A stretch of 64,000 bases of DNA, from the IMG/VR virus record IMGVR_UViG_3300020172_001601, positions 1 through 64,000 of that record; one strand, 5' to 3'. A program made the translations under genes and the position numbers. The notes below the pieces were generated by a model. The model saw only the letters and a program-made list of their open reading frames with translations. It ran no database searches and was not told the origin of the DNA. Below are positions 10,739 through 63,073 of the stretch, piece after piece (position 1 is the stretch's first letter; every line of letters begins with the position of its first letter).

Positions 10739-11287
10739 ATGGCAGTGAATCCCTGGAAAGCTCCCACCGAAATTGTCGAACTGCTCGATCAAATCAAAGA
10801 TAAGCATCACTCAAGGCTTGCTAATGCGTCCATTGCCGTGTGCATGGATGACAGCAAGCCTTTTTTGCGTAATAAACTCAATCTTGGGAAAGTGACGAAG
10901 TTCAGCCCATTGGCGAGGCTCTGGCAAGGCCAGCAGCATGATTTCTGCCTGTCCATTCCAATGGACTTGTGGCATTCTGTCCTGAAAGGGAACCAACGTG
11001 AGGCTTATCTCGATTTACAACTGTCCCGTTGTGGGGTAGAATATCTCCCGGAAGAAATCGAGGAGAACGGCAAGAAGAAGCCAATCAAGGATGAATGGGG
11101 TCGTGTTCAGTATACGCAAGAGGTAAAAGTCGATGACGAAGGGAATCCGAAGTGGAAAGTTGTTCCACTCGACCTTGAGGTTTTCGCTGATAACGTGCGT
11201 AGATATGGATTATGGTGCGACGATCTTTTGGAGTTAAAAAACGCCATTATCGCAGCACCAGATACCGGAGGGGTGAATGGAGCGTAG
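10739..11287 (+). CDS. Phage metallopeptidase-like domain protein with degenerate active site
   Basis: HSRLANASI, LGKVTK, W..L...QREAYLD, DLEVF...VRRYGLW match the putative phage metallopeptidase family, but HELxH is replaced by LQLSR. Confidence 0.6.
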   Translation: MAVNPWKAPTEIVELLDQIKDKHHSRLANASIAVCMDDSKPFLRNKLNLGKVTKFSPLARLWQGQQHDFCLSIPMDLWHSVLKGNQREAYLDLQLSRCGVEYLPEEIEENGKKKPIKDEWGRVQYTQEVKVDDEGNPKWKVVPLDLEVFADNVRRYGLWCDDLLELKNAIIAAPDTGGVNGA

Positions 11288-11717
11288 GCGAGTAATAGAA
11301 CTGGTTATCGTGGGCCTGTGGCTGACCATAGCTGTAGTGCTGTTTATTCACTACCAAAAGGACACCAACAAGACTGTCCCCATCCCTGACAAGTTGGTTG
11401 CTCCAACTGTGCCGGAATCCGAAAAGGGAAAGCGATTTGATGTTCGCAAGGTAACTGTTTTGCGTGGAGATTCTTTCGACATAACCATGAAGGATGAGGC
11501 GAATACCCGAATCCTGGGCAAGTTGCCCGTCATGGCCACTGAGAATGCGAAAGGAAAAGTGCTGGACCTGTTGAACCACAGCACGAATCCGAAAGTTGTT
11601 TTGCGTGAGAAGCAACCGGATGGCCGCTGGACTATTGATTTCTTTTTCACAAATAATGAAGGAAAAGAAATGAATTTGGTCGAGTGGCTGAGTTCCAATA
11701 ATCTGGTATACAAATGA
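11277..11717 (+). CDS. Membrane-anchored protein, possibly a degenerate thermonuclease (SNase-like) fold
   Basis: N-terminal TM; VTVLRGDSFDI resembles SNase V..DGDT; GRWTIDFF and NLVEWL..NNLV follow the SNase layout. Confidence 0.45.
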   Translation: MERRRVIELVIVGLWLTIAVVLFIHYQKDTNKTVPIPDKLVAPTVPESEKGKRFDVRKVTVLRGDSFDITMKDEANTRILGKLPVMATENAKGKVLDLLNHSTNPKVVLREKQPDGRWTIDFFFTNNEGKEMNLVEWLSSNNLVYK

Positions 11718-12904
11718 ACGAACAAGAGGGTGTAGTGACCGAACAACGGCGTCGTCGGTCCTCGGATGATCTGGCAATAGAAGCAGCGGAAGAGGATGGT
11801 AGTAGACAGGAGCCGCAGAAGCGTGGACGAGAAAATGTTCTCTCCAAAACTCAGCGGCTCTTATCGGAAAGGATCAAGGCGGCTCTTACGGAAAAGGGCA
11901 TGGCTAAGATCGCTATATTTACGCATCCTTGCCCTGACCCCGATGCCATTGGGTCACAAATGGGGCTTGCTTGGCTGCTTCGCAAAGCATATGAGGGTGT
12001 AGATGTTGACTGTTTTTACGATGGTCATCTTTCACACCCGCAGAACCAGCGAATGTGCAATTTGCTGGACCCGGAGTTGAAGCTCTATACAGACTGTCAA
12101 CCCGACGAATATGATCTTCGTGTATCTGTAGATACCGTGCCAGCGCACGCTAGTTGTCCAGATAACACGACATTCGATTTGGTTATTGACCACCATAGAG
12201 AAATACCAAATGGTGGATTCAAGGGCCTGTTCTTAAACCTCAAGGGTGGCAGTTGTTGTGCCACCATCTATCAACTCATCAAGGCTCATGGCCTTGGCTT
12301 CGAGGAAGACAATGATGCTGATTCCAAGGTAGCCACGGCTTTGCTGGTGGGCATCATCACTGATACTGAATATCAAACTTCAGACGATACCACTGATCTC
12401 GAACACGAAGCCTATCGAGAGTTATTTGAATATCGTAACTCTGCACACCTGAAGGAAATCACCCGATATAAACAGCCCCGTGAATGGGTTCAGGCTCGTG
12501 CATGTGTGGCTCAGAAGGCCCATGATCGCATTAAGGACGGCGTATTGATTCACGGTATTGGCTTCATCACTGGAAGCAATCGTGATTTGATCGCTGCTGT
12601 AGCCGATGATATGCTTTCCTGGGAGAACGTCGAAACCGCTGTGGCTTTTGCTGTAGTTGATGGCGACCGCATTGAAGGTTCAGTTCGCAGCATGAATGCT
12701 GCCCTTGCCGTACCAACACTCTGTAAAGAGTTGGGCCACGCTCTTGGTGGCTCTGGTGGCGGTAAATTGGGCAAAGGTGCATATGCCTATGCACTTGGCA
12801 GTTGTGCCAACGATGGCGAAATGGACGAAAGCATTAAAGAGAAGTTGTGGGAATTCATTCACGAACGAGAACTCAAGAGGCTCCACAAAATCATCAAGAA
12901 GTAG
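11714..12904 (+). CDS. DHH/DHHA1 phosphoesterase (NrnA-like)
   Basis: THPCPDPDAIGS, VDT, IDHH, GIITDT, GSVRS, glycine-rich GGSGGG. Confidence 0.9.
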   Translation: MNEQEGVVTEQRRRRSSDDLAIEAAEEDGSRQEPQKRGRENVLSKTQRLLSERIKAALTEKGMAKIAIFTHPCPDPDAIGSQMGLAWLLRKAYEGVDVDCFYDGHLSHPQNQRMCNLLDPELKLYTDCQPDEYDLRVSVDTVPAHASCPDNTTFDLVIDHHREIPNGGFKGLFLNLKGGSCCATIYQLIKAHGLGFEEDNDADSKVATALLVGIITDTEYQTSDDTTDLEHEAYRELFEYRNSAHLKEITRYKQPREWVQARACVAQKAHDRIKDGVLIHGIGFITGSNRDLIAAVADDMLSWENVETAVAFAVVDGDRIEGSVRSMNAALAVPTLCKELGHALGGSGGGKLGKGAYAYALGSCANDGEMDESIKEKLWEFIHERELKRLHKIIKK

Positions 12905-17788: not shown

Positions 17789-18292
17789 ATGAAACCAAAA
17801 GCCGCACCCCTTGCGATAGTTCCCGTAGCCGATATTCCACAGGCGGTGGATGTCCCTGTCGATAATTTACTTCCTGTCTTTCGCACCATCACGCAGATGG
17901 AACAACTTTGCACAGCACAAGAAGGAATTGGCCTATCAGCGGTTCAGGTAGGCATTCCCTGGAAGTTATTTATCGTCCAAAGAGGCCACGGTTACGAATA
18001 TTACATCAACTGTGAGTATAATGGCATTGGTGAAAAACAAAAATCTATCGAAGGATGTTTATCTCTTCGAGACTCGCAGGGCAATTTGCGACGATTCGAG
18101 GTTGACCGATATTCCTCGATTGCCGTAAAGGGCAAGCAACTGAAAATATCATCCGACTCCCCTTCTTTGGTTTTGGATGATGTGGATCACATCGAACACG
18201 ATCTATATGCAGTTGTTTTTCAGCACGAGATAGATCACCACAATGATGTCCTTATCAGCGACATTGGCACCGAAGTCGAACTCACGAGGTAA
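17789..18292 (+). CDS. def: Peptide deformylase
   Basis: All three signature motifs: GIGLSAVQVG, EGCLS, QHEIDH. Confidence 0.95.
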   Translation: MKPKAAPLAIVPVADIPQAVDVPVDNLLPVFRTITQMEQLCTAQEGIGLSAVQVGIPWKLFIVQRGHGYEYYINCEYNGIGEKQKSIEGCLSLRDSQGNLRRFEVDRYSSIAVKGKQLKISSDSPSLVLDDVDHIEHDLYAVVFQHEIDHHNDVLISDIGTEVELTR

Positions 18293-18604: not shown

Positions 18605-19111
18605 TTACTTTGCCATTGATTTCTGAAGTCGCATCAGCATGTGATATACATGGCCTTCCGACTCTGTATTCATTGCTGCTCGAAGTACATTGTCGTTTAG
18701 CACCGGATCGTTGAAGCGGGCGATTTCTTTCGCCATGATTTCAGCGGTCTTTTCGCTTTTGACCGCACGATCTCGATACCAATAAAGTAGCATCCCGATA
18801 ACGGCCAGAGAGAACACGAGAATCAAAGCCCCGTCTCCCTGGAGAATTTGTACGCCACTGTTCTCGTTTCGAGACAATGAGGCGTTCAAGTTAAGAAGTC
18901 CATTCTGAACTTCCTTTAGTTGACTGTTCTGTATTTCGGCTGATTGCTTTAGCTTGCCAATTTCGGCCATTACGCCGTTTTGGTTATTGCGTATTTCGTC
19001 AATCCTACCGTTGTTGTTGTCGATTGGCGAGTTGTTCCGTGGGTTTAGGTTTGCGCATCCGCTCATTCCGACCGACAGAGCAATCACCAGAATTGTAAGA
19101 ATCCTTCTCAT
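18605..19111 (-). CDS. Lipoprotein with coiled coil and second TM helix (possible spanin-like)
   Basis: MRRILTILVIALSVGMSG|C lipobox, AGGAGG RBS, coiled coil, TM GALILVFSLAVIGMLLYWY. Confidence 0.65.
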   Translation of the reverse strand: MRRILTILVIALSVGMSGCANLNPRNNSPIDNNNGRIDEIRNNQNGVMAEIGKLKQSAEIQNSQLKEVQNGLLNLNASLSRNENSGVQILQGDGALILVFSLAVIGMLLYWYRDRAVKSEKTAEIMAKEIARFNDPVLNDNVLRAAMNTESEGHVYHMLMRLQKSMAK

Positions 19112-19211
19112 GGTGTAAATCCTCCTACAGTATGTATTGACAACCCAAAGTTTTTCTCGTATCTTTCTCACCAACCACCCCTCTACGCCAGACCAAAAAG
19201 GAGGTTGCAAT

Positions 19212-19700
19212 ATGGCGCAACAAAAATGGCAGGATGCAGACCTGGATTACGACGAGATCGAAGTTCAGGGTGGCGATGAATCGCCGGAAGAATATACGCC
19301 AGAGCAAGAACGTGCCATCAAGGTCTTTGCCCAGGATTTCTACAGTGATGTGAAAGCCCTGGCTCGACAATATATGGAGCAGTTCTTTCAGGATAAGATG
19401 CTTCACTGCGGCGGCAAAATTCCCAAATCACTTCTCTTCGCTGAACGCCGGGTTTCGATGGTCTTGAATTACGATATAATCAAGGGCGTCGAGCGAGCAT
19501 ACAAATATCTTGAACCCACATTGCGGATTCAAGATGTCGAATCCGCAAAGCAGACAGGTGAGGCCACAGACGATATTAAGCTCGTCAATGAAACCCTCAG
19601 TTTACTCGCTCGGTCAGGCATCCCACAGCAATTTGCTGGCGGTATGATGTGCTTGTACTTAGAGTTTATTGAGGGCGTCCATATTGGCACAGAACCGTGA
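19212..19700 (+). CDS. Hypothetical protein
   Basis: AAGGAGG RBS before ATG 19212. Confidence 0.75.
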   Translation: MAQQKWQDADLDYDEIEVQGGDESPEEYTPEQERAIKVFAQDFYSDVKALARQYMEQFFQDKMLHCGGKIPKSLLFAERRVSMVLNYDIIKGVERAYKYLEPTLRIQDVESAKQTGEATDDIKLVNETLSLLARSGIPQQFAGGMMCLYLEFIEGVHIGTEP

Positions 19701-19986
19701 TCTCAGTTTCCTAGCTCGACAATGGGAAACTGTTGAACTGCCCAAAGAGAAGAAGTATTTGCTCAGATACTTCAATACGCCGCTTCAAGCGGCCTTCTTA
19801 AAGTACGTCCACATCTTTGGAGATTACTCTAATTTCGTTGACCATACTGGCCTAGCAAGTAGCCCTCGATGGCTCGCAATCCTGTACAATAGATTGCAGA
19901 CATTGCAAACACTACACCGTGAAGCTAGGGCTAATATGGATATGACGGCCCTGGCTCACATTGAATCAGGGAATTACAAATTATGA
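19669..19986 (+). CDS. Hypothetical protein
   Basis: Fills the gap; ATGA-coupled to IDO; start uncertain. Confidence 0.6.
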   Translation: MRASILAQNRDLSFLARQWETVELPKEKKYLLRYFNTPLQAAFLKYVHIFGDYSNFVDHTGLASSPRWLAILYNRLQTLQTLHREARANMDMTALAHIESGNYKL

Positions 19987-21170
19987 GCATGTGGGATATT
20001 ACAGATCGTGGGTTTCTAGGCGTGGCCGATCCACTCGTTTCGCTCACGGCTAAAAACGAAAAGTATATTCCAGCCGCCGTTAGGTTGGAAAATATTGCTT
20101 CTGTTTTGCCGTATTGGATTGAAGAAAGATGTATACGAGAAGAACTCGTACACAACCTGCGTGAGATTGCCCCGTTGATTGATGGTGAGTTTTTACTGAA
20201 TCAAGATGAGGTAAAAACCGAACGGCTGATGCACCTGTATTCCTATATGGCCAGTGCTTATGTCTTCGCTAGACATGAGAATGCCGCCACGAGAATACCG
20301 TCAGAGATCGCTGTTCCACTTACTATGGTCGCTGAAAAGCTAGACCGCAAACCGATCCTTTCTTACGCTTCATATTGTTTAACCAATTGGGAGCGTATAG
20401 ACCCTAATGATGAAATCAAGTTGGGCAATATAAAATTGCTTACAAACTTTTCATCGCCAGAGTCGGGAAAATCAGATGAGGACTGGTTCATTCTGGTTCA
20501 TGTCGATATTGAAAATTGTGCTGCCGATGGTGTTGGTGCCTGTAAACAACTTTTGGAAAATCCCTGGAAGCAAGGCAACGAAGTTCACAATATTGTCACG
20601 GCCAACGATATTCTTACCAAGATTTTCGTCAGCTTGGCGAAGATGAATAAGACAATGGCAAAGATGCCAGATGAATGCAGTCCAGACAATTACTTCCGAT
20701 GGGTGAGGCCGTATATCTTCTCGTTCAATAACATGGTCTATAAAGGCTGTTTCCAAGATCAGCCAATTACCTGTCGAGGGGAAACCGGGGCGCAAAGTAG
20801 CATCATTCCTGCTTTTTTGGCGGCTCTCGAAATCAACCATCAGGATTCCATGCTGACGCATCACCTTATGGAGATGCGTGATTACATGCCAGCCCCTCAC
20901 CGACGATTTCTTTCAAATCTTGTGATCCAGACAGCGAATAATTCCGTTGTGGGGGTAGGTCTGCGAGATTTTGCTCGGCGTGACCCGGTGTTGAAGGACA
21001 TCTACAACGAGTGCGTCAATGAGATTATTGCCTTCCGAAACAAGCATTTCGAGTACGCAGTCAACTATATCTCCAAGAAGGTTGAAAATCCTTCCGGGAC
21101 GGGCGGTACGCCCTATGTCCCGTGGCTGAAACAACTTAGAGAAGAAACCGAGTCACACCTGATCCCGTAA
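19983..21170 (+). CDS. Indoleamine 2,3-dioxygenase family heme enzyme
   Basis: P.LSYASYCL.NW, DEDWFILVH, VRPYI, RGETGAQSS, MRDYMP..HRRFL, FRNKH (heme His), GTGGT. Confidence 0.92.
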   Translation: MSMWDITDRGFLGVADPLVSLTAKNEKYIPAAVRLENIASVLPYWIEERCIREELVHNLREIAPLIDGEFLLNQDEVKTERLMHLYSYMASAYVFARHENAATRIPSEIAVPLTMVAEKLDRKPILSYASYCLTNWERIDPNDEIKLGNIKLLTNFSSPESGKSDEDWFILVHVDIENCAADGVGACKQLLENPWKQGNEVHNIVTANDILTKIFVSLAKMNKTMAKMPDECSPDNYFRWVRPYIFSFNNMVYKGCFQDQPITCRGETGAQSSIIPAFLAALEINHQDSMLTHHLMEMRDYMPAPHRRFLSNLVIQTANNSVVGVGLRDFARRDPVLKDIYNECVNEIIAFRNKHFEYAVNYISKKVENPSGTGGTPYVPWLKQLREETESHLIP

Positions 21171-21176
21171 GTTTGC

Positions 21177-21205
21177 TTTACAGCACGGCAAAATCAGGGT
21201 AGAAT
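21177..21205 (+). promoter_or_regulatory. Early-type promoter TTTACA-N17-TAGAAT
   Basis: Same architecture at 56676, 58383, 61181 and 62338. Confidence 0.7.
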
Positions 21206-21246
21206 TGCGGCGTTGACACACAGAAAATTAGACGGGAAGCACAAAT

Positions 21247-22455
21247 ATGCTCAAGCGCTTAATGAGTCTCTTTTTGATGGCGAGTATGATTCTCGCAACC
21301 ATGCCAGAGGAGGCTTTTGCTGGGAAAGGAAGGTCTTATTCTTCCGGCAGAAGCTCGTCGTCGAGTCGGTCTTCGTCCTCGTCCTCGTCAAGTAGTCGTC
21401 CTTCCGGCAAGTCGTACTCTTCTGGTTCGTCCAATAAGGGTTCGTCGTTTGCTACGAAACCGAGTTCGCCGCCCAGCAAGCCATACTCGCCGCCCCAGGC
21501 ATCGAGTCCTAGTGGCAAGAAGTATTCTTCAGGGAGCAGCGCACCACCGGCTGCAAAGTCCAGTCCCCCAGCGGGCAAAAAATATTCATCTGGAAATTCG
21601 TCGCCGCCTGTAAAGTCGAGTCCACCGCCAGTTGCATCTGGTACGGATGGCAAGAAGTATTCATCAGGTTCACCGGGATCGCCACCACCATACACACCGG
21701 GAAAGCAATACACAGCCGGAAGTCCACCGCCATCAACTGGACCGCCAGTTGCCAATAAGTCTGCTGACGGCAATAGTCGTAAGCCAAGTGGTAGTGGGTT
21801 CGGCAATGCAATGAGCAGTGACGCCAAGCGTGTTGAAAGTCAGAAGCGATACGAGGCAGCAACCACTCCGAAGTCAACATATACGTCAAAGGGTGCTGAT
21901 GGCAAAGTCGTTCAGCAAACAATCAAGCCAGATTCTCCCCAGGTTCAAACTGTTCGTCGGAGTGTCACTCATGAACGATATGTGACCTACGACAATCGTG
22001 CCAGTGTGTTTTATGGTGGATACAGCCCGATGTATTATCATGACCCATTCAGCCCATTTTTGATGGGATGGATTATGTCTGATGCCATCAATAGCCATCA
22101 ACGGGCAATGTGGATGTATCATCATCAGCCAGTGTCGGCGGGTGGCACGATTGACGACGCTCGGTATGCTGAAATGCTCAAAAAGGATGCAAAACTACAA
22201 GCTGAGATTGACCAATTGAAGGCGCAGAATATTACTCGTGATCCGAGTTATGTGCCGCCTGAAATGGCCGACAATCCTGACTTGATGTTCAATAAAGATT
22301 TCGTGGATGCTTCTTACAATCCTGTAGAAGTAGAAGCGAATACTCCATCGGGGAGTAGCGGAGCAGGGGCATTCTTCTTCTGGATGTTCATCGTCTTCGT
22401 GGTGGTTGTTGTTGGTGGCTTGGCCGTCTACTTCCTGTTCATGAAGGAATACTAA
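21247..22455 (+). CDS. Secreted Ser/Pro/Gly-rich membrane-anchored protein
   Basis: Signal peptide ending AFA, repeated G(K/R)xYSSG motif, C-terminal TM. Confidence 0.75.
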   Translation: MLKRLMSLFLMASMILATMPEEAFAGKGRSYSSGRSSSSSRSSSSSSSSSRPSGKSYSSGSSNKGSSFATKPSSPPSKPYSPPQASSPSGKKYSSGSSAPPAAKSSPPAGKKYSSGNSSPPVKSSPPPVASGTDGKKYSSGSPGSPPPYTPGKQYTAGSPPPSTGPPVANKSADGNSRKPSGSGFGNAMSSDAKRVESQKRYEAATTPKSTYTSKGADGKVVQQTIKPDSPQVQTVRRSVTHERYVTYDNRASVFYGGYSPMYYHDPFSPFLMGWIMSDAINSHQRAMWMYHHQPVSAGGTIDDARYAEMLKKDAKLQAEIDQLKAQNITRDPSYVPPEMADNPDLMFNKDFVDASYNPVEVEANTPSGSSGAGAFFFWMFIVFVVVVVGGLAVYFLFMKEY

Positions 22456-22458
22456 GCG

Positions 22459-23163
22459 ATGAAATTGTACGAGCTTCTGTTGAGAAAGATCGGCTTGTGG
22501 AGTGATTCCTCTCAGCCAGCCGAGGTCGATAAGGCCCAAGAGGATTTGATTTATAATCCCATCGGTTGTAAAATCGGTGGGGTGGTCAAGATCGACTCTT
22601 TGGACTTTCGAGATCATCGGTTTACGGTGAGGGAGATTCGAGAATACTCTCTGTCTCTCGGCGGGAACAAACACCGTATGGTCGATTATGTCCTGTTGGC
22701 CCGTCCCATCGGGAAGCCCGACTTCACTTGTCGGCTCCGTATTGTGCCGAACCCGGACAGCAAGAGCAAAACGACGCATCGAGCGTTGCTTATGTCGCTG
22801 TACGACGATCTGGCGTACAATGAGGGCCTTCATGAAGTCGTGAAAGATGACACGAAGAAGTTCGTGATTGATGATGACACCGATCCGAACAACATCATTC
22901 ATGATGAGTTTTGGCGGGTGAATGATGTAGGAACTTCCTACGTCAGCAACATCAAAATCCTTGCTGATTCCGATGGGAGTGGCAAGGTGGACGAGAGTGA
23001 AGTCTCCAGAGGTTCAGTCGAGTTTTGGGATTACTCCCGAAACACCGACATGGACGGCGTTGAAGTCGAAGAGTTCGTCTTCGTGGAGATGGACAAGAAA
23101 GATGGTTGGTTCAAAGTCTGGCGTGGGTCTGAGGTCAACCCGGAACGCATCGACGTGTTCTAA
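22459..23163 (+). CDS. DUF4178/DUF2491 (YjfK-like) protein
   Basis: NPIGCKIGGVVKID, EFWDYSR, FVEM...WFKVWRG.EV layout; directly upstream of pspA. Confidence 0.55.
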   Translation: MKLYELLLRKIGLWSDSSQPAEVDKAQEDLIYNPIGCKIGGVVKIDSLDFRDHRFTVREIREYSLSLGGNKHRMVDYVLLARPIGKPDFTCRLRIVPNPDSKSKTTHRALLMSLYDDLAYNEGLHEVVKDDTKKFVIDDDTDPNNIIHDEFWRVNDVGTSYVSNIKILADSDGSGKVDESEVSRGSVEFWDYSRNTDMDGVEVEEFVFVEMDKKDGWFKVWRGSEVNPERIDVF

Positions 23164-23222
23164 AGTTGCCCCGGCGTCGGGTGTCAACGTGATTCAAACT
23201 TCTCACAAAGGGGATTCTGGTT

Positions 23223-24014
23223 ATGAGTATTTTCTCTGCAATCGTGTTGGGTGGTGTGGTTCTTTTGGTGCTGGCAGCAGTCAGCCCTCCGGCTCGTCGG
23301 TTCTTCAAGGCCCTTGGCCTTTGGGGTGGGGCGCAGGCCGATAAGAGTGCTGAAGCGGTGTTGAATGCTGACCCGCTGGGAGTTCTCAAGACGCAGATTG
23401 CCAATGCTGCCGAGAACGGCAAGCAGGCCAATTCTGTGGTCGAGGCTGCTGCCAAGCAGTTGATTTCTTTGGAAAATCAGATTGCTGATGGACTGAAGGA
23501 GCAACAGCGACTTACCAATCGCATCGAGTCGGTTTTGGCAAAGGGCGATCCGAACAAGAACGCTCCGAAGTATGCCGCTGATCTTGCTCGTGTCGAAGAA
23601 AACCTGGGGATCAACCAGGAACAGAAAGAGCTTGCTCAACAGCAGTACGACGACAACCTCAAGTTGGTCGAACGCTTCGAGCGGGAGATTCAAGAGGCCC
23701 GTAAGGACGCCGCTGATCTCGGTCTGCAACTTCAGCAGTCTGAAGCTGAGAAGAACCTGCACCAAATGTCGGCTTCTCTCAAGGACAAGTTGAATGTGGG
23801 CGACTTGGCTGCTGCTCGTCAGCGTGTCAAGGACCAGATCAACTCCAACAAGGGTTCTGCCAAGGCTGCTCGTGACCTGAACCGGGTCGGTCTGGCCGAA
23901 GAGGAAGACGAAGAGTTGGAACGCAGTGTCGCCGCCGATGCTGTTCTGGCTCGCTTTAAGAAAGCCGATGGTGCTGATGCCGGTGGCTCCGGCTCCACCT
24001 TTTCTGGTAGCTAA
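23223..24014 (+). CDS. PspA/IM30 (ESCRT-III-like) protein with N-terminal membrane anchor
   Basis: ADPLGVLKTQI, long helical heptads, C-terminal A.ADAVLARFK typical of the PspA helix 5. Confidence 0.75.
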   Translation: MSIFSAIVLGGVVLLVLAAVSPPARRFFKALGLWGGAQADKSAEAVLNADPLGVLKTQIANAAENGKQANSVVEAAAKQLISLENQIADGLKEQQRLTNRIESVLAKGDPNKNAPKYAADLARVEENLGINQEQKELAQQQYDDNLKLVERFEREIQEARKDAADLGLQLQQSEAEKNLHQMSASLKDKLNVGDLAAARQRVKDQINSNKGSAKAARDLNRVGLAEEEDEELERSVAADAVLARFKKADGADAGGSGSTFSGS

Positions 24015-24082
24015 GGCCAGCTACCCGAACTTGGAAGTCGGAATTGATTATCCAAGTATTGTGAAGCCTAAGAAGTAACTTG

Positions 24083-24113
24083 ACCCCGCTGTGGAAACAC
24101 AGCGGGGTTTTTT
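24083..24113 (+). terminator. Intrinsic terminator
   Basis: accccgctgtg-gaaa-cacagcggggt followed by a U tract. Confidence 0.9.
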
Positions 24114-24126
24114 CGTTTATGGCACT

Positions 24127-24133
24127 CTAAATA
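24127..24133 (+). promoter_or_regulatory. Late-type promoter motif CTAAATA
   Basis: T4-late-like; 7 nt before ATG 24141. Confidence 0.6.
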
Positions 24134-24140
24134 TCAAGTA

Positions 24141-25169
24141 ATGAGCAACTTCAATAAATATCTCAGTTCCCGACGAGTCGATGTAGACGTAGACCGTATT
24201 GCTAGGCTTATGGTTCAAAAGAACGTCGATCCCAATTGGTATATTCGTCGCTACTTAGAAGCGATGGAATCTGATGATGGTTTGATCCTTGAAGGTTGGC
24301 TGGGGAGTTTCTTCAAACGTATTGGCAATGCGTGGAGTGGGTTTTGGAAAGACCCTAATCCTCAAGATTCGCCATCGACCCGTTTAGAGGCCGCAAAGAA
24401 GGCCCTGCAAGACCTTGTACAGATGGTACAACAGAACCAAGGCGCTGAATCAAACGTCTTAGGCGTCGTCCTACGAGGTCTGGAGCAGTCTTTGGGCATC
24501 ATTGATAAGATTGAGCCGCCTCTCAAGACAGCCGAACCACGAATCAAGCAATTTCAAGCGGCCCAGGCAGGTGGACAAGCTGGCACCGTCATGTTCCAGG
24601 GCGATCCCAACAATCGACTGCCGGATGACCTTCATCAGAAGTTTGAAGACATCATGCACCGTCGCAATATGCTGATTCAGCAGCCCGATAGTGAAGCCAA
24701 GGCGACCAATCTGGTCAAGAATGATGATGAGCTATTGCAGTTCAGGCAGCAACTTGAGGATCAATATCAGCAAATGGCCCCCAAGACGCCGCAGGATCAG
24801 CAAAATAAAGAACGTATTAAAACATTTCTAACCCGGATAGATACCGATGCAACCTTCCGAGAGATCGAGAGTTTACTTGATTTTGCTCGAAAGCGGACTC
24901 AAGGCAACAATTTGATGGTGTCTCGTCCGCAAGGTTACGAACAGGCAGTATTGGCTTTTAGGAACATAGCGGCCACAACAACGGACCCTAAACAACAAAA
25001 AGATCAGTTGTTGCATTGGTATCAGTCGTTGCCTGCCAATAATCCAGTAAAGCAATTCGTTATGAACGACGTTCGGGAACATCCTGAGTTGGGCAACGAG
25101 TTGGAATTGTTTTGGAAATACTCCCAAGAATGGATAAATAAACTACCACATTTTTTGGCTTCGAGGTAA
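24141..25169 (+). CDS. Hypothetical Gln-rich protein, candidate internal head/ejection protein
   Basis: MSNFNKYL N-terminus; LILE-GWLGSFFKR resembles a prohead-protease site followed by an amphipathic helix. Confidence 0.65.
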   Translation: MSNFNKYLSSRRVDVDVDRIARLMVQKNVDPNWYIRRYLEAMESDDGLILEGWLGSFFKRIGNAWSGFWKDPNPQDSPSTRLEAAKKALQDLVQMVQQNQGAESNVLGVVLRGLEQSLGIIDKIEPPLKTAEPRIKQFQAAQAGGQAGTVMFQGDPNNRLPDDLHQKFEDIMHRRNMLIQQPDSEAKATNLVKNDDELLQFRQQLEDQYQQMAPKTPQDQQNKERIKTFLTRIDTDATFREIESLLDFARKRTQGNNLMVSRPQGYEQAVLAFRNIAATTTDPKQQKDQLLHWYQSLPANNPVKQFVMNDVREHPELGNELELFWKYSQEWINKLPHFLASR

Positions 25170-25172
25170 AGA

Positions 25173-26207
25173 ATGAAAGATTTTCAGCAAGTATTGAGGA
25201 TGTTGATGGAAGGCGACGAAAGCGTGCCTGATAAGGCTGCGCCGCCCCCAACTTCATTTTCGGGTGGGGTAGAAGATGCTACCAATGCCGCCGAAGCATT
25301 TTCTGCGTTTGCGAATGAACACAAGCAGATATATGGTCAATTCAAGGGTGTGATCGGCACTGCCGAGAAGCAACTCGACGCCTTGCAGCAGCACTCTGTA
25401 TCGTTCAATCGTTCTATGGGTAGTCGTCCCGATCCAAGTACGTTCGCAGCCCAGGCTCCACGTCCTAAGTTTGATCGTAGTCGTGTTGCCGCTTTGCAGT
25501 CTGATCTATCTGGCATGAAGCCACCAGTTACTCCTGGGGCCGTGCCAGAACACACCAGCATCCTCGAAGCTGATGGTGCGGATATGATGAAGACTAGCGA
25601 ATTCATTAAGGGTGCAAAAGAAGCCCTGACTGGTGCATTAGCACAATACGAAGCCCACTTAACTGATCTCATCAAGAGAACAAAGGGCAAGATGCAAGAG
25701 TTCGCAGGTCAAGTTACAGGCATGGCAGCGAATCAAGAGTCACTACAGAAGAAGGTCGAAGAACTTCAGGCCAACTTCGAGCAGGCCAGTGGTCAGGTTG
25801 GAAACCTTGTACAGCGTGTTTCGTCTCTCGAACAACATGGCCGTGCAGAAGATCAAGGCGAAATCAAGAAGCTCAGTGGCGAATTGCAGAACCTTGGTGC
25901 TGCTCTCCAACAGAAGCAAGCCGAAGCAGAAGAATTGGCCAAATCTTTGGGCGACGTTTCTACTCGTGCCAGCGATGCAATGCAGGATATGATGTCCAAG
26001 ATTGAAGAACTGGAACAATACAGTGATGAACTATATCAGCAATACGAGAAGCTGCACGCTGCATATTCCAGCTTGCACAAGCGAGCCAAGGAACAGCAGA
26101 TGATCTCTGCTCCTGAACACGTTAAAAACTATGGCAAGTTCGATTTGATCGAACACCTGTCACGAGCCAAGGCAAAAGACTTCAAAAAGAATTCAGCCGA
26201 TTGGTAA
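25173..26207 (+). CDS. Long coiled-coil protein, candidate internal head protein
   Basis: Heptad repeats over about 170 aa; MKDFQQVLRMLME N-terminus. Confidence 0.7.
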   Translation: MKDFQQVLRMLMEGDESVPDKAAPPPTSFSGGVEDATNAAEAFSAFANEHKQIYGQFKGVIGTAEKQLDALQQHSVSFNRSMGSRPDPSTFAAQAPRPKFDRSRVAALQSDLSGMKPPVTPGAVPEHTSILEADGADMMKTSEFIKGAKEALTGALAQYEAHLTDLIKRTKGKMQEFAGQVTGMAANQESLQKKVEELQANFEQASGQVGNLVQRVSSLEQHGRAEDQGEIKKLSGELQNLGAALQQKQAEAEELAKSLGDVSTRASDAMQDMMSKIEELEQYSDELYQQYEKLHAAYSSLHKRAKEQQMISAPEHVKNYGKFDLIEHLSRAKAKDFKKNSADW

Positions 26208-26226
26208 TGAATTAAGTGGTTTACAG

Positions 26227-26255
26227 AAAAGGACGGCGAGAGCCGTCCTTTTTTT
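26227..26255 (+). terminator. Intrinsic terminator
   Basis: aaaaggacggc-gaga-gccgtcc followed by T7. Confidence 0.9.
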
Positions 26256-26266
26256 GTTTGTATGGT

Positions 26267-26273
26267 CTAAATA
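26267..26273 (+). promoter_or_regulatory. Late-type promoter CTAAATA, 5 nt before ATG (leaderless)
   Basis: CTAAATA-gctgt-ATG. Confidence 0.65.
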
Positions 26274-26278
26274 GCTGT

Positions 26279-26500
26279 ATGGCACTATTAAGTTTCAAAG
26301 ATTGGCGATCTTCGTTGGGCGAAGCAAGCTCCTCAACCAGACAAAGAGCGGGATGGGCGTTAGGTCTATATCCTCCAAATGCTGGAGTTATGTCACGATC
26401 AACGCCTTCTCCGTTTATTGTGGATAAAGCACAACAGGAATTCGGTACGCCGGAACATCCTAAGAAGAAGCGTAAAAAGAAAAAGAAAAAGGAAGACTAA
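26279..26500 (+). CDS. Small basic protein
   Basis: MALLSFKDW...LGE; poly-Lys tail; start re-called to 26279. Confidence 0.65.
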   Translation: MALLSFKDWRSSLGEASSSTRQRAGWALGLYPPNAGVMSRSTPSPFIVDKAQQEFGTPEHPKKKRKKKKKKED

Positions 26501-27069
26501 TGAATTTTTCCGAGTGGCTGATAGATGAAGCACGGCGGGGACATAAGCCCCATCCAGATCAACGCACGTTGTTTGATCGTGGGGATTTCGTGCCTAAGAA
26601 AGCACCAGCCAAAAAGAAGATTTCATCTGTCGCACATACAGATATTGATCGCTGGCTCAAGTCAGTAGACGGTCTTGCGAAAGACCTGAGTGCTTTGAAA
26701 GACGCAGAAGTGAAGGCAAAAGGAAAAATGAATCAGATTGGCAAGCCTAAGTCTGACAAGCCCGATGACGACAAGTCTATTGAAAAAGAGAAGGACAATG
26801 AAAAGCCAGGACTTGAGCGAAAGGCTACTGAACGGCCCCGGCCTGAAGCCGATAGAAAAGTTTTGTCGCTCCGATCTAAGCCTGACGCAAAACCAGAAAG
26901 AGAACCAGAATCAAAACCAAAATCAAAACCAGAGCGCCAATTTAGAATGCGGCGACCCGATGCGGAGGATAGCACCGATGTCAAACGAGTCATTGAAGAC
27001 CAACCAACCCCAAGAAAGTCCAAGCCCAAAGCCGTTAAAAACGTCGATGTGGAAGAGGATATGGAATAA
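26500..27069 (+). CDS. Highly charged low-complexity protein (MNFSEWLIDE start)
   Basis: TAATG-coupled; K/E/P-rich. Confidence 0.7.
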   Translation: MNFSEWLIDEARRGHKPHPDQRTLFDRGDFVPKKAPAKKKISSVAHTDIDRWLKSVDGLAKDLSALKDAEVKAKGKMNQIGKPKSDKPDDDKSIEKEKDNEKPGLERKATERPRPEADRKVLSLRSKPDAKPEREPESKPKSKPERQFRMRRPDAEDSTDVKRVIEDQPTPRKSKPKAVKNVDVEEDME

Positions 27070-27866: not shown

Positions 27867-28316
27867 ATGAATAAGGTACGCAGACGTTTCAAAGAAACGG
27901 TTAATCGAGATGATTACTGGATGGCGATGGCATTTATGCTGTCAGCCGGTTCCTCTTCTAATCGTCCACAAGGCTGCATAATCGTTGGCACGAACAATGA
28001 ACCACTGGCTATGGCCTGCGATGGCTCGCCCAGGTCCATGCAGGACAGCAGCCATGTGGTTCATGCCGAGATGAATGCAATATTCAATTGCAAAGGCCCC
28101 ATTCCTGGCGGCACAGCATATTTGACTCACACGCCCTGTTATCATTGCGCCCTGAGTTTAATCGGGGCAAATATCAAAAGAATAGTATATTTTCCCACCA
28201 AATCTATAGACCCAGACACTTTAGATGCTGTACGATGTGCATACGCTCAATCAGATGAGTTCAAGGGCAACCTGAACTGGATGAGGGACTATCTCAAGAC
28301 CCTCAACATATTTTGA
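27867..28316 (+). CDS. dCMP deaminase
   Basis: VVHAEMNAI and TPCYHCA zinc motifs. Confidence 0.88.
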   Translation: MNKVRRRFKETVNRDDYWMAMAFMLSAGSSSNRPQGCIIVGTNNEPLAMACDGSPRSMQDSSHVVHAEMNAIFNCKGPIPGGTAYLTHTPCYHCALSLIGANIKRIVYFPTKSIDPDTLDAVRCAYAQSDEFKGNLNWMRDYLKTLNIF

Positions 28317-29136: not shown

Positions 29137-30768
29137 ATGCCATCAGTAGCCGAATTTTTGATCGAACGCCTGGAGAATGCCGGAGTTAAACATATCTTCG
29201 GTGTCCCAGGCGATTATGTTTTACAGTTTATTCAGCAGGTTTCTCAAACCGACAAGATTAAGTTCATCAATACGACTGACGAAAATCATGCCGGATTTGC
29301 AGCAGACGCATATGCGAGAATTCATGGCATTGGTTGCGTGTGTGCCACATATAACGTCGGAGCTTTGAAGCTCTGTAATTCAGTGGCCGGAGCATACGCT
29401 GAAAGATCGCCAGTATTGGTTATCAGTGGCTCGCCAGGACTGAAGGAAAGAAACGATGATTTTCTCCTTCATCATGTTGTCAAAGGGTTCGATAACCAGT
29501 TGAAAATATTCAATCATATAACCTGCCACAGTGTTATATTGGATGACGCCACGACAGCAGGTTGGAAAATCGACCAAGCTCTCGAAATGCTCAAGCACTA
29601 TAAGCAGCCGGTATATATCGAACTGCCTCGTGACGTAGCCGATCAGCCATTGAGATATGACGTATATCGTCAGGGGACTCCTGTGGAGCCGCCGAGCGAT
29701 GAAGAAAATCTCAAAGAAGCTCTGACTGAAATTTCCCAATGGATCAAAGATGCCAAGAATCCTGTCATTATGGCTGGAGTTCAGGTCGCTCGATTTGGAT
29801 TGGGCGGTGCGTTGGTTCGGTTTGCCGAGCGGCACAATATTCCAATGGTCACAACTTTATTGAGCAAATCAACAATCAATGAGCATCACCCATTGTTCGC
29901 CGGAGTATATTGTGGCAATCAAACGTCTGAGGAATCTCTACGAAAATTAGTGGACGATTCAGACTGCCTTCTGATATTCGGCGAAATGCTTACGGATATG
30001 ATGCTAGGGTTCCAATCCCCTAAATTTGCCAAGCGACAAACCGTATCTTGCTCTATTGAAGAGTTGAAGATTCGTAACCATTCTTATACGGACGTGCGGT
30101 TCTTGGATGTCTGCAATCATTTGTTCAAATCTGACTTGGGCAAGCGAGAGGCACCAAATATTCCTGTTCGTAAGAAGGCTGAATCATTTGTGCCTGTGGC
30201 TGACGCCAAGATCACCACAACTCGATTCTTTGAGAAGATCGACAGCATGTTGACCGACCAGATGGCGGTCGTGGCAGATATTGGCGAATGCTTATTTGGT
30301 GCTGCTGAACTCACTGTTTCACATCATCACTTTATCAGCCCCGCATTTTATTGTAGCATGGGTCCAGCCATCCCCGGAGCGTTGGGCTTGCAGATGGCGA
30401 AACCTCATTTGAGGCCAATTGTGCTGGTTGGTGACGGTGCATTCCAAATGTCTGTGACCGAACTGAGTACAATATTAGAACATAAATTGAACCCCATCGT
30501 ATTTGTCCTGAATAATCAGGGCTATACAACAGAAAGATTTCTGTTGGATGGAGACTTCAATAACATAAGAAATTGGGATTACCACAAAGTAACTGAAATG
30601 TTACGAGGCGGTCAGGGAGTTAAAGTAGAGACGGAAGACCAGCTTGAAGCTGCCATCGCTACTGCCTTGAAATGCACTACGTTGTTCGTAGTGAATGTCT
30701 CTGTTGATTCCAAAGACATAACTCCAGGTTTAAGGAGAATGGTTGAAAACCTTTCTAAGAGAGTCTAA
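29137..30768 (+). CDS. ThDP-dependent alpha-keto-acid decarboxylase (pyruvate/indolepyruvate decarboxylase family)
   Basis: FGVPGDY, E..AGFAADAYAR, LLHH, GDGAFQM...NNQGYTTER. Confidence 0.92.
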   Translation: MPSVAEFLIERLENAGVKHIFGVPGDYVLQFIQQVSQTDKIKFINTTDENHAGFAADAYARIHGIGCVCATYNVGALKLCNSVAGAYAERSPVLVISGSPGLKERNDDFLLHHVVKGFDNQLKIFNHITCHSVILDDATTAGWKIDQALEMLKHYKQPVYIELPRDVADQPLRYDVYRQGTPVEPPSDEENLKEALTEISQWIKDAKNPVIMAGVQVARFGLGGALVRFAERHNIPMVTTLLSKSTINEHHPLFAGVYCGNQTSEESLRKLVDDSDCLLIFGEMLTDMMLGFQSPKFAKRQTVSCSIEELKIRNHSYTDVRFLDVCNHLFKSDLGKREAPNIPVRKKAESFVPVADAKITTTRFFEKIDSMLTDQMAVVADIGECLFGAAELTVSHHHFISPAFYCSMGPAIPGALGLQMAKPHLRPIVLVGDGAFQMSVTELSTILEHKLNPIVFVLNNQGYTTERFLLDGDFNNIRNWDYHKVTEMLRGGQGVKVETEDQLEAAIATALKCTTLFVVNVSVDSKDITPGLRRMVENLSKRV

Positions 30769-48021: not shown

Positions 48022-48564
48022 ATGACAAATTTTACAACAACGGAGCGACATGCGCTCGTATTGGATCACGTTTCTTTGGCTGAAAAGATTGCCAAAAGCA
48101 GAAAAAAGAAACTTACGCAAGTTTCTTATGATGAGTTGAAATCGGCGGCGTATTTAGGGTTGGTTGAGGCTGCTGCACACTATAATCCGCAGGAAAACGA
48201 CTGTTTCCCAGCGTATGCAGTATGGCGAATTATTGGAGCGGTAAGGGATTATCTCCGAGAACTATCTTGGGGTCCACGTTCCAACCCGGTAAAGATGGTA
48301 GAAATTTTTGTTTTTGAAGAACACATCTTTGACCAAGAAATAGTAGATCGTGCCGGATTTTTCGAGAACGTGATTAGGCAGTTACCAACCGTAAACAAAA
48401 CTGTTCTGAAACTTTACTATCAGGAAGGAATGAAGATTAAGGAAATCGCCAGCGATTTAGGTGTTCACCAATCGAGGGTATCCCAAATTCTATCCGACTC
48501 CCGACTAAAACTGAAGAACATATGGAAAGAGCAGCAGGCTGAATTATGGGCCGCAGCAGCGTAA
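48022..48564 (+). CDS. Sigma70-family sigma factor (FliA/WhiG-like regions 2 and 4)
   Basis: DELKSAAYLGLVEAA..Y, FPAYAVWRIIGAVRDYLR, LYYQEGMKIKEIASDLGVHQSRVSQI. Confidence 0.9.
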   Translation: MTNFTTTERHALVLDHVSLAEKIAKSRKKKLTQVSYDELKSAAYLGLVEAAAHYNPQENDCFPAYAVWRIIGAVRDYLRELSWGPRSNPVKMVEIFVFEEHIFDQEIVDRAGFFENVIRQLPTVNKTVLKLYYQEGMKIKEIASDLGVHQSRVSQILSDSRLKLKNIWKEQQAELWAAAA

Positions 48565-56675: not shown

Positions 56676-56704
56676 TTTACAAGAGCGAAAAACCACGGTA
56701 TAAT
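56676..56704 (+). promoter_or_regulatory. Early-type promoter TTTACA-N17-TATAAT
   Basis: Exact 17-nt spacing with GG before the -10. Confidence 0.75.
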
Positions 56705-62374: not shown

Positions 62375-63073
62375 GTGATCGCACGATATACTCCTGGCAA
62401 AGCAAAAGCCATGTTGCTCGAATTAGTGACAATTGAAACACCAGCCGCCTTCAAGGTGGTTAGCAGGGAGGCTATTGATCCGACGAAGTATATTTTCTTG
62501 GTCGAAGCGATTGCGCACAAGTTTCGGAAAAGGTTCCGGGGTAAATTCGAGAAGATCGAGGATACCGAGCCATATTCCATTGCTTCAATGGAGTTGGTCA
62601 AGGCCGCTGCCGGATACGATCCTGAAGTGAATGAAGACTTTAGCCGGTACGCATTTCGTGCGATGCGAAATGGAATTATCGAAGCCATTCGTCATCGTAA
62701 TCGTCAAAAGCGAACTGCTGAATTTGCCAAGTTGACCACTCTTGAGTGGCAAGAATTGCCAGAGAAAGAACAAGTTCTGTCTGCCGATATTCCCTCGGAT
62801 GTATATCAGACCTTGATGGCGAATCACCCGGACGATACCGAACAAGATCGTGCTGATAAGGCACTCTTGACGGAAATCTATATCCAGGGCAAAAAGATTC
62901 CATTCATTGCGGAGAAGTATGGAATCAGCAGAATGACGGTATACAACCGTCTTCGTCGCATCATTGGAAAAATCCGTCAGCGTCACAGCGACCTGATTGA
63001 GTCACACGGGGGAATACTCGATGAATGTCCTGAAAGAGAGCCTTGTCGTCTTCACCGAAGGGGCGAGGGTTAA
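62375..63073 (+). CDS. Sigma70-family (ECF-like) sigma factor
   Basis: LVKAAAGYDP...FSRYAFRAMRNGI (region 2); IAEKYGISRMTVYNRLRR (region 4 HTH); start 62375 or 62411. Confidence 0.85.
   Translation: MIARYTPGKAKAMLLELVTIETPAAFKVVSREAIDPTKYIFLVEAIAHKFRKRFRGKFEKIEDTEPYSIASMELVKAAAGYDPEVNEDFSRYAFRAMRNGIIEAIRHRNRQKRTAEFAKLTTLEWQELPEKEQVLSADIPSDVYQTLMANHPDDTEQDRADKALLTEIYIQGKKIPFIAEKYGISRMTVYNRLRRIIGKIRQRHSDLIESHGGILDECPEREPCRLHRRGEG

Follow-up and report, generated by a model that had tools for sequence, protein, structure and literature searches.

A three-gene operon of a huge phage encodes a divergent PspA-family protein with a predicted membrane tether

The window analyzed here, a 64-kb stretch of DNA (64,000 nucleotides), is the start of a 340,341-bp IMG/VR record (IMGVR_UViG_3300020172_001601) with an estimated completeness of ~69% (CheckV), and its source is therefore a huge phage. 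Region 21177-24119 of this window is an autonomous operon of three co-oriented genes on the + strand, here called A (21247..22455, 402 amino acids [aa]), B (22459..23163, 234 aa), and C (23223..24014, 263 aa), and it is a phage-borne form of the YjfJ-type PspA operons that bacteria deploy in envelope stress. Gene C encodes a divergent PspA/IM30 protein of the ESCRT-III superfamily, gene A a predicted envelope protein of an unnamed family, and gene B a protein with the modeled fold of DUF4178 and DUF2491. A sequence-only reading of this stretch had described an early promoter, a secreted Ser/Pro-rich transmembrane (TM) protein, a DUF4178/YjfK-like protein, a PspA with an added N-terminal TM helix, and a strong terminator; promoter, A, B, C, and terminator were all found where it had placed them. 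Searches of sequencing runs found the DNA of the locus in freshwater, sediment, and aquaculture metagenomes only, and megablast of positions 19000 to 27000 against 50,697 GenBank phage records returned no match and thus no near relative.

Products of the three genes

The assignment of C to PspA was based on a Pfam match, on a bridge through a hidden Markov model (HMM) of the C family, and on a fold match. C matched Pfam PF04012 with an E value of 1.1e-5, residues 49 to 248 aligning with profile positions 22 to 217 of 220 (196 of the 220 positions), and homologues of C fell into 39 clusters. Orthologues in the same A-B-C context scored 39.5 bits (locus L036) and 35.3 bits (locus L064), both above the curated gathering cut-off of 33.9, and PF04012 was matched (E < 0.01) by 15 of the 26 aligned C homologues, the best with an E value of 1.5e-8. 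The C-family HMM in turn recovered planctomycete open reading frames (ORFs) that pass PF04012 themselves (56.2 and 44.7 bits), with E values of 4e-28 and 2e-26. The AlphaFold2 (AF2) model of C is all-helical (pLDDT 78), with a long hairpin (residues 51-106 and 114-165) followed by helices at 174-191, 195-220, and 227-251. Its seven best fold matches in the PDB were Vipp1 rings and tubes (E values of 8e-3 to 3e-2, TM-score of at most 0.53); archaeal CdvB and CHMP chains were also among the PDB matches, and the fold matches among reviewed proteins included Mycobacterium tuberculosis PspA, Vps24, Vipp1, Bacillus subtilis PspA, Escherichia coli YjfJ, and E. coli PspA. The proposal that this ORF would prove to be a PspA/ESCRT-III protein was thus borne out by the near-full-length Pfam match, by orthologues above the cut-off, and by Vipp1 at the top of the solved folds.

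The added N-terminal TM helix of C, recognized by hydropathy, spans residues 3 to 20 (23229..23282, +), and behind it the AF2 model and the alignment place an equivalent of the amphipathic α0 helix at residues 22 to 48 (23286..23366, +). Because this second helix aligns with the extreme N terminus (MILGKIWGAFKAQLNK) of TM-less planctomycete homologues, the TM helix is an addition, as had been proposed; it is lacking in the cellular homologues L070 and L071, both of which start straight at the amphipathic helix. C is predicted from these features to be held on the cytoplasmic face of the membrane by the extra helix. An N-terminal TM helix on PspA is not a phage-only feature, since a Gemmataceae metagenome-assembled genome (MAG) encodes a PF04012-positive protein (43 bits; L073, 1381-2124) that begins with such a helix; next to it comes a membrane protein of 441 aa. 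Like PspA, Vipp1 (IM30), and LiaH, C has a full-length PF04012 match and, in the model, an α1-α2/3 hairpin with shorter helices and a helix at the α0 position; unlike them, it has a true TM helix ahead of α0, and its identity to solved or reviewed PspA and Vipp1 is ~18-22%. No PspF, PspB, or PspC partner was seen beside C, although no search was aimed at them.

Gene A fits its earlier description as a secreted Ser/Pro-rich TM protein. A signal peptide could be read from the sequence at residues 1 to 25 (MLKRLMSLFLMASMILATMPEEAFA, with its end at AFA/GK; 21247..21321, +), and the N-terminal hydrophobic leader is kept throughout the family alignment (A3). It is followed by a low-complexity spacer rich in Ser, Pro, Gly, and Lys (residues 26-189; 21322..21813, +), whose ~165 residues include 56 S (34%), 28 P (17%), 21 G, and 16 K, and which carries five YSSG motifs of the KxYSSG type at residues 31, 57, 93, 113, and 138; the repeat consensus GKSYSSG is common to phage and Pirellulales homologues of A. 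Next comes a conserved, putatively extracytoplasmic domain of ~180 residues (residues ~190-367; 21814..22347, +), which has 14 invariant columns (alignment A4) and the motif VTHERYVTYDNR...FSPFLMGW...RAxWMYHH, and then a C-terminal TM helix defined by hydropathy (residues 376-398; 22372..22440, +) and a tail, F-x-K-E-Y, that is conserved in alignment A3. A is accordingly predicted to be exported but to stay anchored in the cytoplasmic membrane through the C-terminal helix, with the spacer and domain outside and the tail inside. Its homologues formed 41 clusters, and a search of 1.84 billion proteins with a profile of the A domain yielded 608 cluster representatives (E ≤ 1e-3). Gene A matched no Pfam, PHROG, NCBIfam, or PADLOC family, none of 35 diverse, distant members of the domain family there matched any Pfam family, and the ESM Atlas returned unnamed clusters alone for the domain (commonest in Verrucomicrobiota). 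On these grounds A appears to be a single-pass envelope protein of an unnamed family.

Gene B, whose homologues formed 72 clusters, has no hydrophobic segment that could serve as a TM helix, and its product is therefore predicted to be soluble and cytoplasmic. The N-terminal helix of B (MKLYE...) is conserved. The AF2 model is beta-rich (pLDDT 85, pTM 0.78), and a Foldseek search of AFDB clusters matched it to DUF4178 (E values of 1.3e-15 with a TM-score of 0.74 and 7.4e-14 with TM-scores of 0.71-0.75) and to DUF2491, the YjfK family (2.5e-7 to 2.8e-5); 20 of the 30 best fold matches bore one or the other name. No convincing match was obtained among solved structures or BFVD viral models, so that the fold is absent among the solved structures searched. 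At the level of sequence, B had no Pfam match at E ≤ 0.1, DUF4178 or DUF2491 was found in none of 32 relatives at E ≤ 1, and a six-frame search of the phage record with PF13785 returned nothing at E ≤ 1; the sole family member to match Pfam DUF4178 was the B part of an A-B fusion protein (P0194), and it did so weakly (E = 0.0065). The modeled fold thus places B in DUF4178 (PF13785)/DUF2491 (YjfK, PF10679), while the Pfam sequence models do not: the DUF4178/YjfK-like identity given to it earlier held for the fold (E = 1.3e-15, TM-score of 0.74) and not for the sequence.

B also contains a 12-residue loop of the EF-hand type (DSDGSGKVDESE, residues 170-181; 22966..23001, +), which was located with a loop pattern and fits the canonical D-x-[DN]-x-[DNS]-G-x-[ILV]-x3-E. 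The strict pattern recurred at the same position in 47 of the 72 B-family clusters versus 2 of 1,440 shuffles, and weak, sub-threshold Pfam matches to EF-hand_1 and EF-hand_5 were seen in 8 and 5, respectively, of 32 relatives. The surroundings of the loop are not helix-loop-helix: in the model a beta strand (161-169) leads into it and a very short helix (179-181) follows, and it has neither an entering helix nor a second loop to pair with. It is best named a DxDxDG-type candidate calcium site.

Transcription unit, conserved linkage, and distribution

A consensus scan placed a sigma-70-like promoter, TTTACA-N17-TAGAAT, at 21177..21205 (+), with 10 of 12 matches. Across the 340-kb record there are 24 copies of the strict pattern TTTAC-N17/18-TAGAAT (23 on the + strand) and none of the reversed control; a relaxed pattern occurs six times in the window versus 0.13 expected. 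The operon promoter is therefore a member of a phage-wide promoter class, beyond chance, and the consensus common to the phage copies is TTTACA-N14-GTGG-TAGAAT. Other class members in the window are a strict-type copy at 11014-11042 and relaxed copies at 56676, 58383, and 62338; one relaxed copy sits directly 5' of a sigma-factor gene (62375). The same motif stands ~40 nt 5' of gene A in five divergent loci (L011, L056, L015, L040, and L067). Sigma70_r2 and r4 matches point to three or four (at least three) proteins of the sigma-70 family in the phage, from genes at 48022-48564 and 62375-63073 (+) of the window and at ~156.4 kb and ~197.4 kb of the record, so its transcription program is probably in part self-directed. 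With at least three such proteins of its own and no RNA run listed for the locus, the word "early" in the previous description of the promoter could not be kept.

The operon is closed, as had been claimed, by a strong intrinsic terminator (24082..24119, +), in which a hairpin (24082-24109), whose 12-bp stem includes 8 GC pairs and closes on a 4-nt loop, precedes a T run; a strong hairpin and T run also lie 3' of gene C in nine other loci (L011, L012, L004, L056, L036, L040, L067, L008, and L046). The gap from the A stop to the B start is 3 nt, with a Shine-Dalgarno-like AAGGAA box within the end of A, and the 59-nt spacer between B and C holds a Shine-Dalgarno-like AAGGGGA ahead of the C start. 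The phage-wide promoter class, the conserved promoter and terminator, the 3-nt gap, and the Shine-Dalgarno-like boxes point to A, B, and C as one transcription unit. The B-C spacer also contains an imperfect GC-rich hairpin (~23165-23189, +) without a T run, which may act in processing or attenuation or have no role at all.

Linkage was tallied by running HMMs of A, B, and C on 68 loci. A lay directly 5' of B in 29 of the 39 loci with room for it, and C directly 3' of B in 14 of 37; the order A-B-C thus recurs in divergent huge-phage contigs, in agreement with the synteny that had been anticipated. The triad loci range from 31 to 58% GC and include contigs of 673, 463, and 190 kb. Their flanks vary: a gene for indoleamine 2,3-dioxygenase (IDO) is present or absent, and two unannotated upstream genes, U1 (19212-19700) and U2 (19669-19986), are absent in L008, L046, and L064. 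On three independent, high-GC contigs A and B form a single polypeptide, in the order signal peptide, YSSG repeats, A domain, TM helix, short linker, and B, and P0194 is a fourth such fusion. A 120-kb Pirellulales contig encodes an A homologue of identical architecture, then DUF350 (the YjfL family), then B, and a distant 182-kb phage contig (L010, 6128-10157) has, in a row, an SPFH protein, A, B, a TM coiled-coil protein, an acidic protein, and a K+ channel. The gene order tally, the fusions, and these two rows argue for a functional linkage of A, B, and C. Within the L010 row, B has the EF-type loop, the TM coiled-coil protein (207 aa) has no Pfam match, the acidic protein has 95 aa, and the channel bears the signature TVGYGD; the row resembles an extended ion and membrane module.

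Cellular copies of B, collected by pattern scan, come mostly from Planctomycetota MAGs, where the closest cellular relatives of both B and C were found. The B family was present in none of 200 further genomes sampled from the phylum to which a Gemmataceae MAG belongs, leaving acquisition of B from a planctomycete host core gene unsupported. In an unrooted tree of B, phage-type and cell-type copies are interleaved rather than cleanly separated, and given this topology and the patchy distribution we claim no donor, host, or direction of transfer.

Bacterial yjfJ-type pspA operons combine DUF350 with a lipoprotein and DUF4178, or DUF350 with DUF1190 and DUF2491, and sometimes include a K+ channel (Ravi et al. 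2024, PMC11237479); the phage, Pirellulales, and L010 contexts mirror these published operons. Like YjfJ-type operons (E. coli yjfIJKLMC and the Shewanella type), the phage operon links a PspA paralogue with two partners, one a DUF4178/DUF2491 protein that is cytoplasmic and rich in beta structure and the other secreted or a lipoprotein, and the cellular cognate of the A-B pair has DUF350/YjfL in between. Unlike them, the phage record yielded no DUF350 when searched (the record being ~69% complete), its PspA has the extra TM helix, its secreted partner, from an unnamed family, is anchored at the C terminus instead of through a lipobox, and its B has diverged beyond the reach of the Pfam DUF4178 and DUF2491 models and contains an EF-hand-type loop. 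It also differs from yjfIJKLMC in that no CesT/Tir-type YjfI was recognized, the flanking genes U1, U2, and D (24141-25169) having no Pfam or NCBIfam match, and in that no polyamine or ATP-grasp genes were seen, the neighbors being IDO, a deformylase, a deaminase, and a thiamine pyrophosphate (TPP) enzyme. The B. subtilis pspA-ydjGHI operon, in which the SPFH protein YdjI is reported to join PspA to the membrane (PMC8581546), is comparable in giving PspA membrane partners from the same operon, and an SPFH gene stands directly 5' of A-B in L010; here, by contrast, the partners are A and B, not YdjG, YdjH, or YdjI, and the tether lies within C itself.

PspA in phages has been reported as 189 genes in 184 huge phages and in 667 IMG/VR genomes, beside a Ca2+-ATPase with TerD and VWA, SPFH, ABC transporters, CPBP, DUF350, and TPM (Yuan and Chen, October 2026, bioRxiv 10.64898/2026.10.24.761521). 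The present case shares with these the very large phage genome and the membrane-associated neighbors; DUF4178/DUF2491, TM-fused PspA, and IDO are unmentioned in that preprint, whose screen used PF04012 at E ≤ 1e-5, right at the score of C from the window (bioRxiv 10.64898/2026.10.24.761521). PspA in huge phages (the 2026 preprint) and the association of PspA with DUF4178 in bacteria (PMC11237479) are thus already known. New here are the self-contained A-B-C operon in a freshwater/sediment huge-phage lineage, the recognition of A as an unnamed family that also occurs naturally fused to B, and the EF-hand-type loop in B; a distinct lineage and a distinct type of neighborhood are thereby added to the huge-phage PspA phenomenon.

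Possible roles of the operon

The explanation toward which we lean, with confidence slightly above even, is that A-B-C keeps the host membrane sealed and energized via an A-B unit coupled to TM-tethered PspA. PspA and Vipp1 are the bacterial branch of the ESCRT-III membrane-remodeling superfamily; their polymers bind and stabilize membranes, and their targeting to damaged membrane is understood in few model systems. A and B would be the outer and inner halves of a single trans-membrane unit, which would report or mark envelope perturbation and recruit C, or regulate its polymerization, at the inner leaflet, and the loop of B may confer a response to Ca2+ entering via a leaky membrane. The phage would gain a host membrane that stays sealed and energized over a long infection cycle, including the avoidance of a premature collapse of the proton motive force. 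The operon suggests that huge phages with PspA actively manage the integrity of the host membrane. The sequence-only reading had offered three uses, to preserve the proton motive force after injection, to resist membrane-pore abortive defenses, or to build a membrane compartment; the analysis lends support to none of the three, and each is putative. Being minimal, with three genes between a promoter and a terminator of their own, the operon is suited to bench work, and its useful features are a membrane-wired PspA, a partner naturally split or fused across the membrane, and a partner with a calcium-type loop.

A more specific form of this explanation, which we regard as unlikely, is a calcium-gated membrane-repair switch in which A-B would act as one trans-membrane sensor, in the manner of the natural A-TM-B fusions, and Ca2+ that leaks across a damaged inner membrane onto the B loop would trigger polymerization of the tethered PspA locally. 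Eukaryotic cells have Ca2+-triggered ESCRT-III wound repair through the ALG-2/ALIX pathway, which likewise involves an ESCRT-III-superfamily polymer and a protein with an EF-hand-type loop; B differs from ALG-2 in that its one loop sits in a beta-rich fold in place of paired EF-hands, the two proteins are not homologous, and calcium binding and recruitment by B are putative. If true, such a switch would give viruses and bacteria an equivalent of Ca2+/ALG-2/ESCRT-III wound repair and would provide the first function for the DUF4178/DUF2491 (YjfK) fold and for the unnamed A family with its 608 clusters.

Several findings weigh against the membrane-sealing explanation or the assignments on which it draws. 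C from the window scored 25.7 bits with PF04012, below the gathering cut-off of 33.9; its fold E values are weak (8e-3 and worse), unrelated long-helix proteins such as BipB scoring alike among Swiss-Prot models; and a C-family profile searched against PDB sequences found no PspA or Vipp1, only keratin and S17e coiled-coil noise. Given that profile search and the weak fold statistics, the PspA assignment of C rests mainly on the sequence bridge. An hhalign comparison of the C alignment with a single canonical and a single TM-anchored planctomycete PspA gave probabilities of 0.5% and 14%, such one-sequence templates being uninformative, and the predicted complex of C (residues 22-263) with B had a score of 0.06, which is evidence neither way. 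The A domain is without a characterized relative, and we know of no function for DUF4178 or DUF2491 in any organism. All sequencing runs that matched the locus were DNA metagenomes, with no RNA run among them. The synteny is partly the common descent of related phages and not selection.

One rival possibility is that the genes have no joint function, with the A-B-C order merely inherited and the PspA likeness of C coiled-coil noise. The sub-cut-off Pfam score of C, the keratin-type coiled coils that were all its PDB sequence profile found, and the fact that flanking U1, U2, and D are syntenic in the clade too would fit such a view; it is nevertheless already disfavored and very improbable, as A-B fusions exist and A-B pairs occur in bacteria, the triad is kept over 31 to 58% GC with its own promoter and terminator while its flanks vary, and the C-family HMM matches PF04012-passing proteins at E values of 1e-26 to 1e-35. 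Among the rival explanations, only inherited synteny is largely excluded. The parts of the operon would serve equally for counter-defense, in which it would neutralize abortive-infection effectors that depolarize or perforate the inner membrane, the TM-anchored PspA patching lesions so that the cycle completes. Huge phages carry many counter-defense genes, and the module is patchy in phages and cells, as is often the case with accessory arms-race genes; we consider this role doubtful all the same, because A, B, and C matched no PADLOC defense-related model (E ≤ 0.01), no anti-defense neighbors were recognized, those present being of metabolic type (IDO, deformylase, deaminase, and TPP enzyme), and the A-B pair also occurs in bacterial genomes without a phage context.

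A could instead alter the envelope or block the entry of competitor DNA, as in superinfection exclusion or surface remodeling, with B and C buffering the stress of its insertion. Exclusion proteins are in many cases small proteins of the membrane, A combines a signal peptide and a membrane anchor with a long extended spacer, and the adjoining minus-strand gene encodes a lipoprotein-type membrane protein. The A domain and the A-B pairing are, however, kept in bacterial genomes and in fusions, which argues for an endogenous cellular role, and none of the three proteins matched a PHROG (E ≤ 0.01), known exclusion proteins included, so that we rate exclusion a little below even the doubtful counter-defense role. 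Improbable, too, and slightly more so, is membrane building, in which a Vipp1-like C would form or maintain, with A and B, internal membranes or vesicles as a viral compartment, a role of special interest if the host were a planctomycete with complex endomembranes. Vipp1 rings and tubes are the best solved-structure matches of C, and it was in Planctomycetota MAGs that B and C had the nearest cellular relatives seen in this analysis; yet a fold match cannot tell Vipp1 from PspA, no lipid-synthesis or other compartment genes were seen beside the operon, and a planctomycete host is putative, with the B family in 0 of 200 other sampled genomes of the phylum.

Neighboring genes and other features

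Directly 5' of the operon lies a full-length IDO gene (19983-21170, +; PF01231, E = 2.8e-61), which overlaps the stop of the preceding ORF. IDO occupies the same place in huge-phage contigs L004, L011, L012, L036, and L056; it is missing between U2 and A in L015, L040, and L067 though A-B-C is kept there, and it was therefore ruled out as a member of the module. Our literature search found no paper on a phage IDO. U1 and U2 lie 5' and D lies 3' of A-B-C in most related phage contigs. In the ESM Atlas, U1 resembled hypothetical clusters that are exclusively viral, some of them labeled portal fragments, which we treat as a lead only; the Atlas gave no support for U1 as a CesT/Tir-like YjfI partner.

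The divergently oriented minus-strand ORF at 18605-19120 has a promoter-like site of its own (19119-19092) and matched no family; its product, with a signal of the lipoprotein type (LSVGMSGC) and a TM helix at the C terminus, would be a further envelope protein beside the block. Accessory host-like genes are abundant around the operon (peptide deformylase, dCMP/cytidine deaminase, a three-domain TPP enzyme, and a DHH/DHHA1 phosphoesterase; 17789-18292, 27867-28316, 29137-30768, and 11714-12904). Elsewhere in the phage, outside the window, a 667-aa open frame carries an SPFH/Band_7 domain (70.6 bits; record positions 96068-96712, locus L076).

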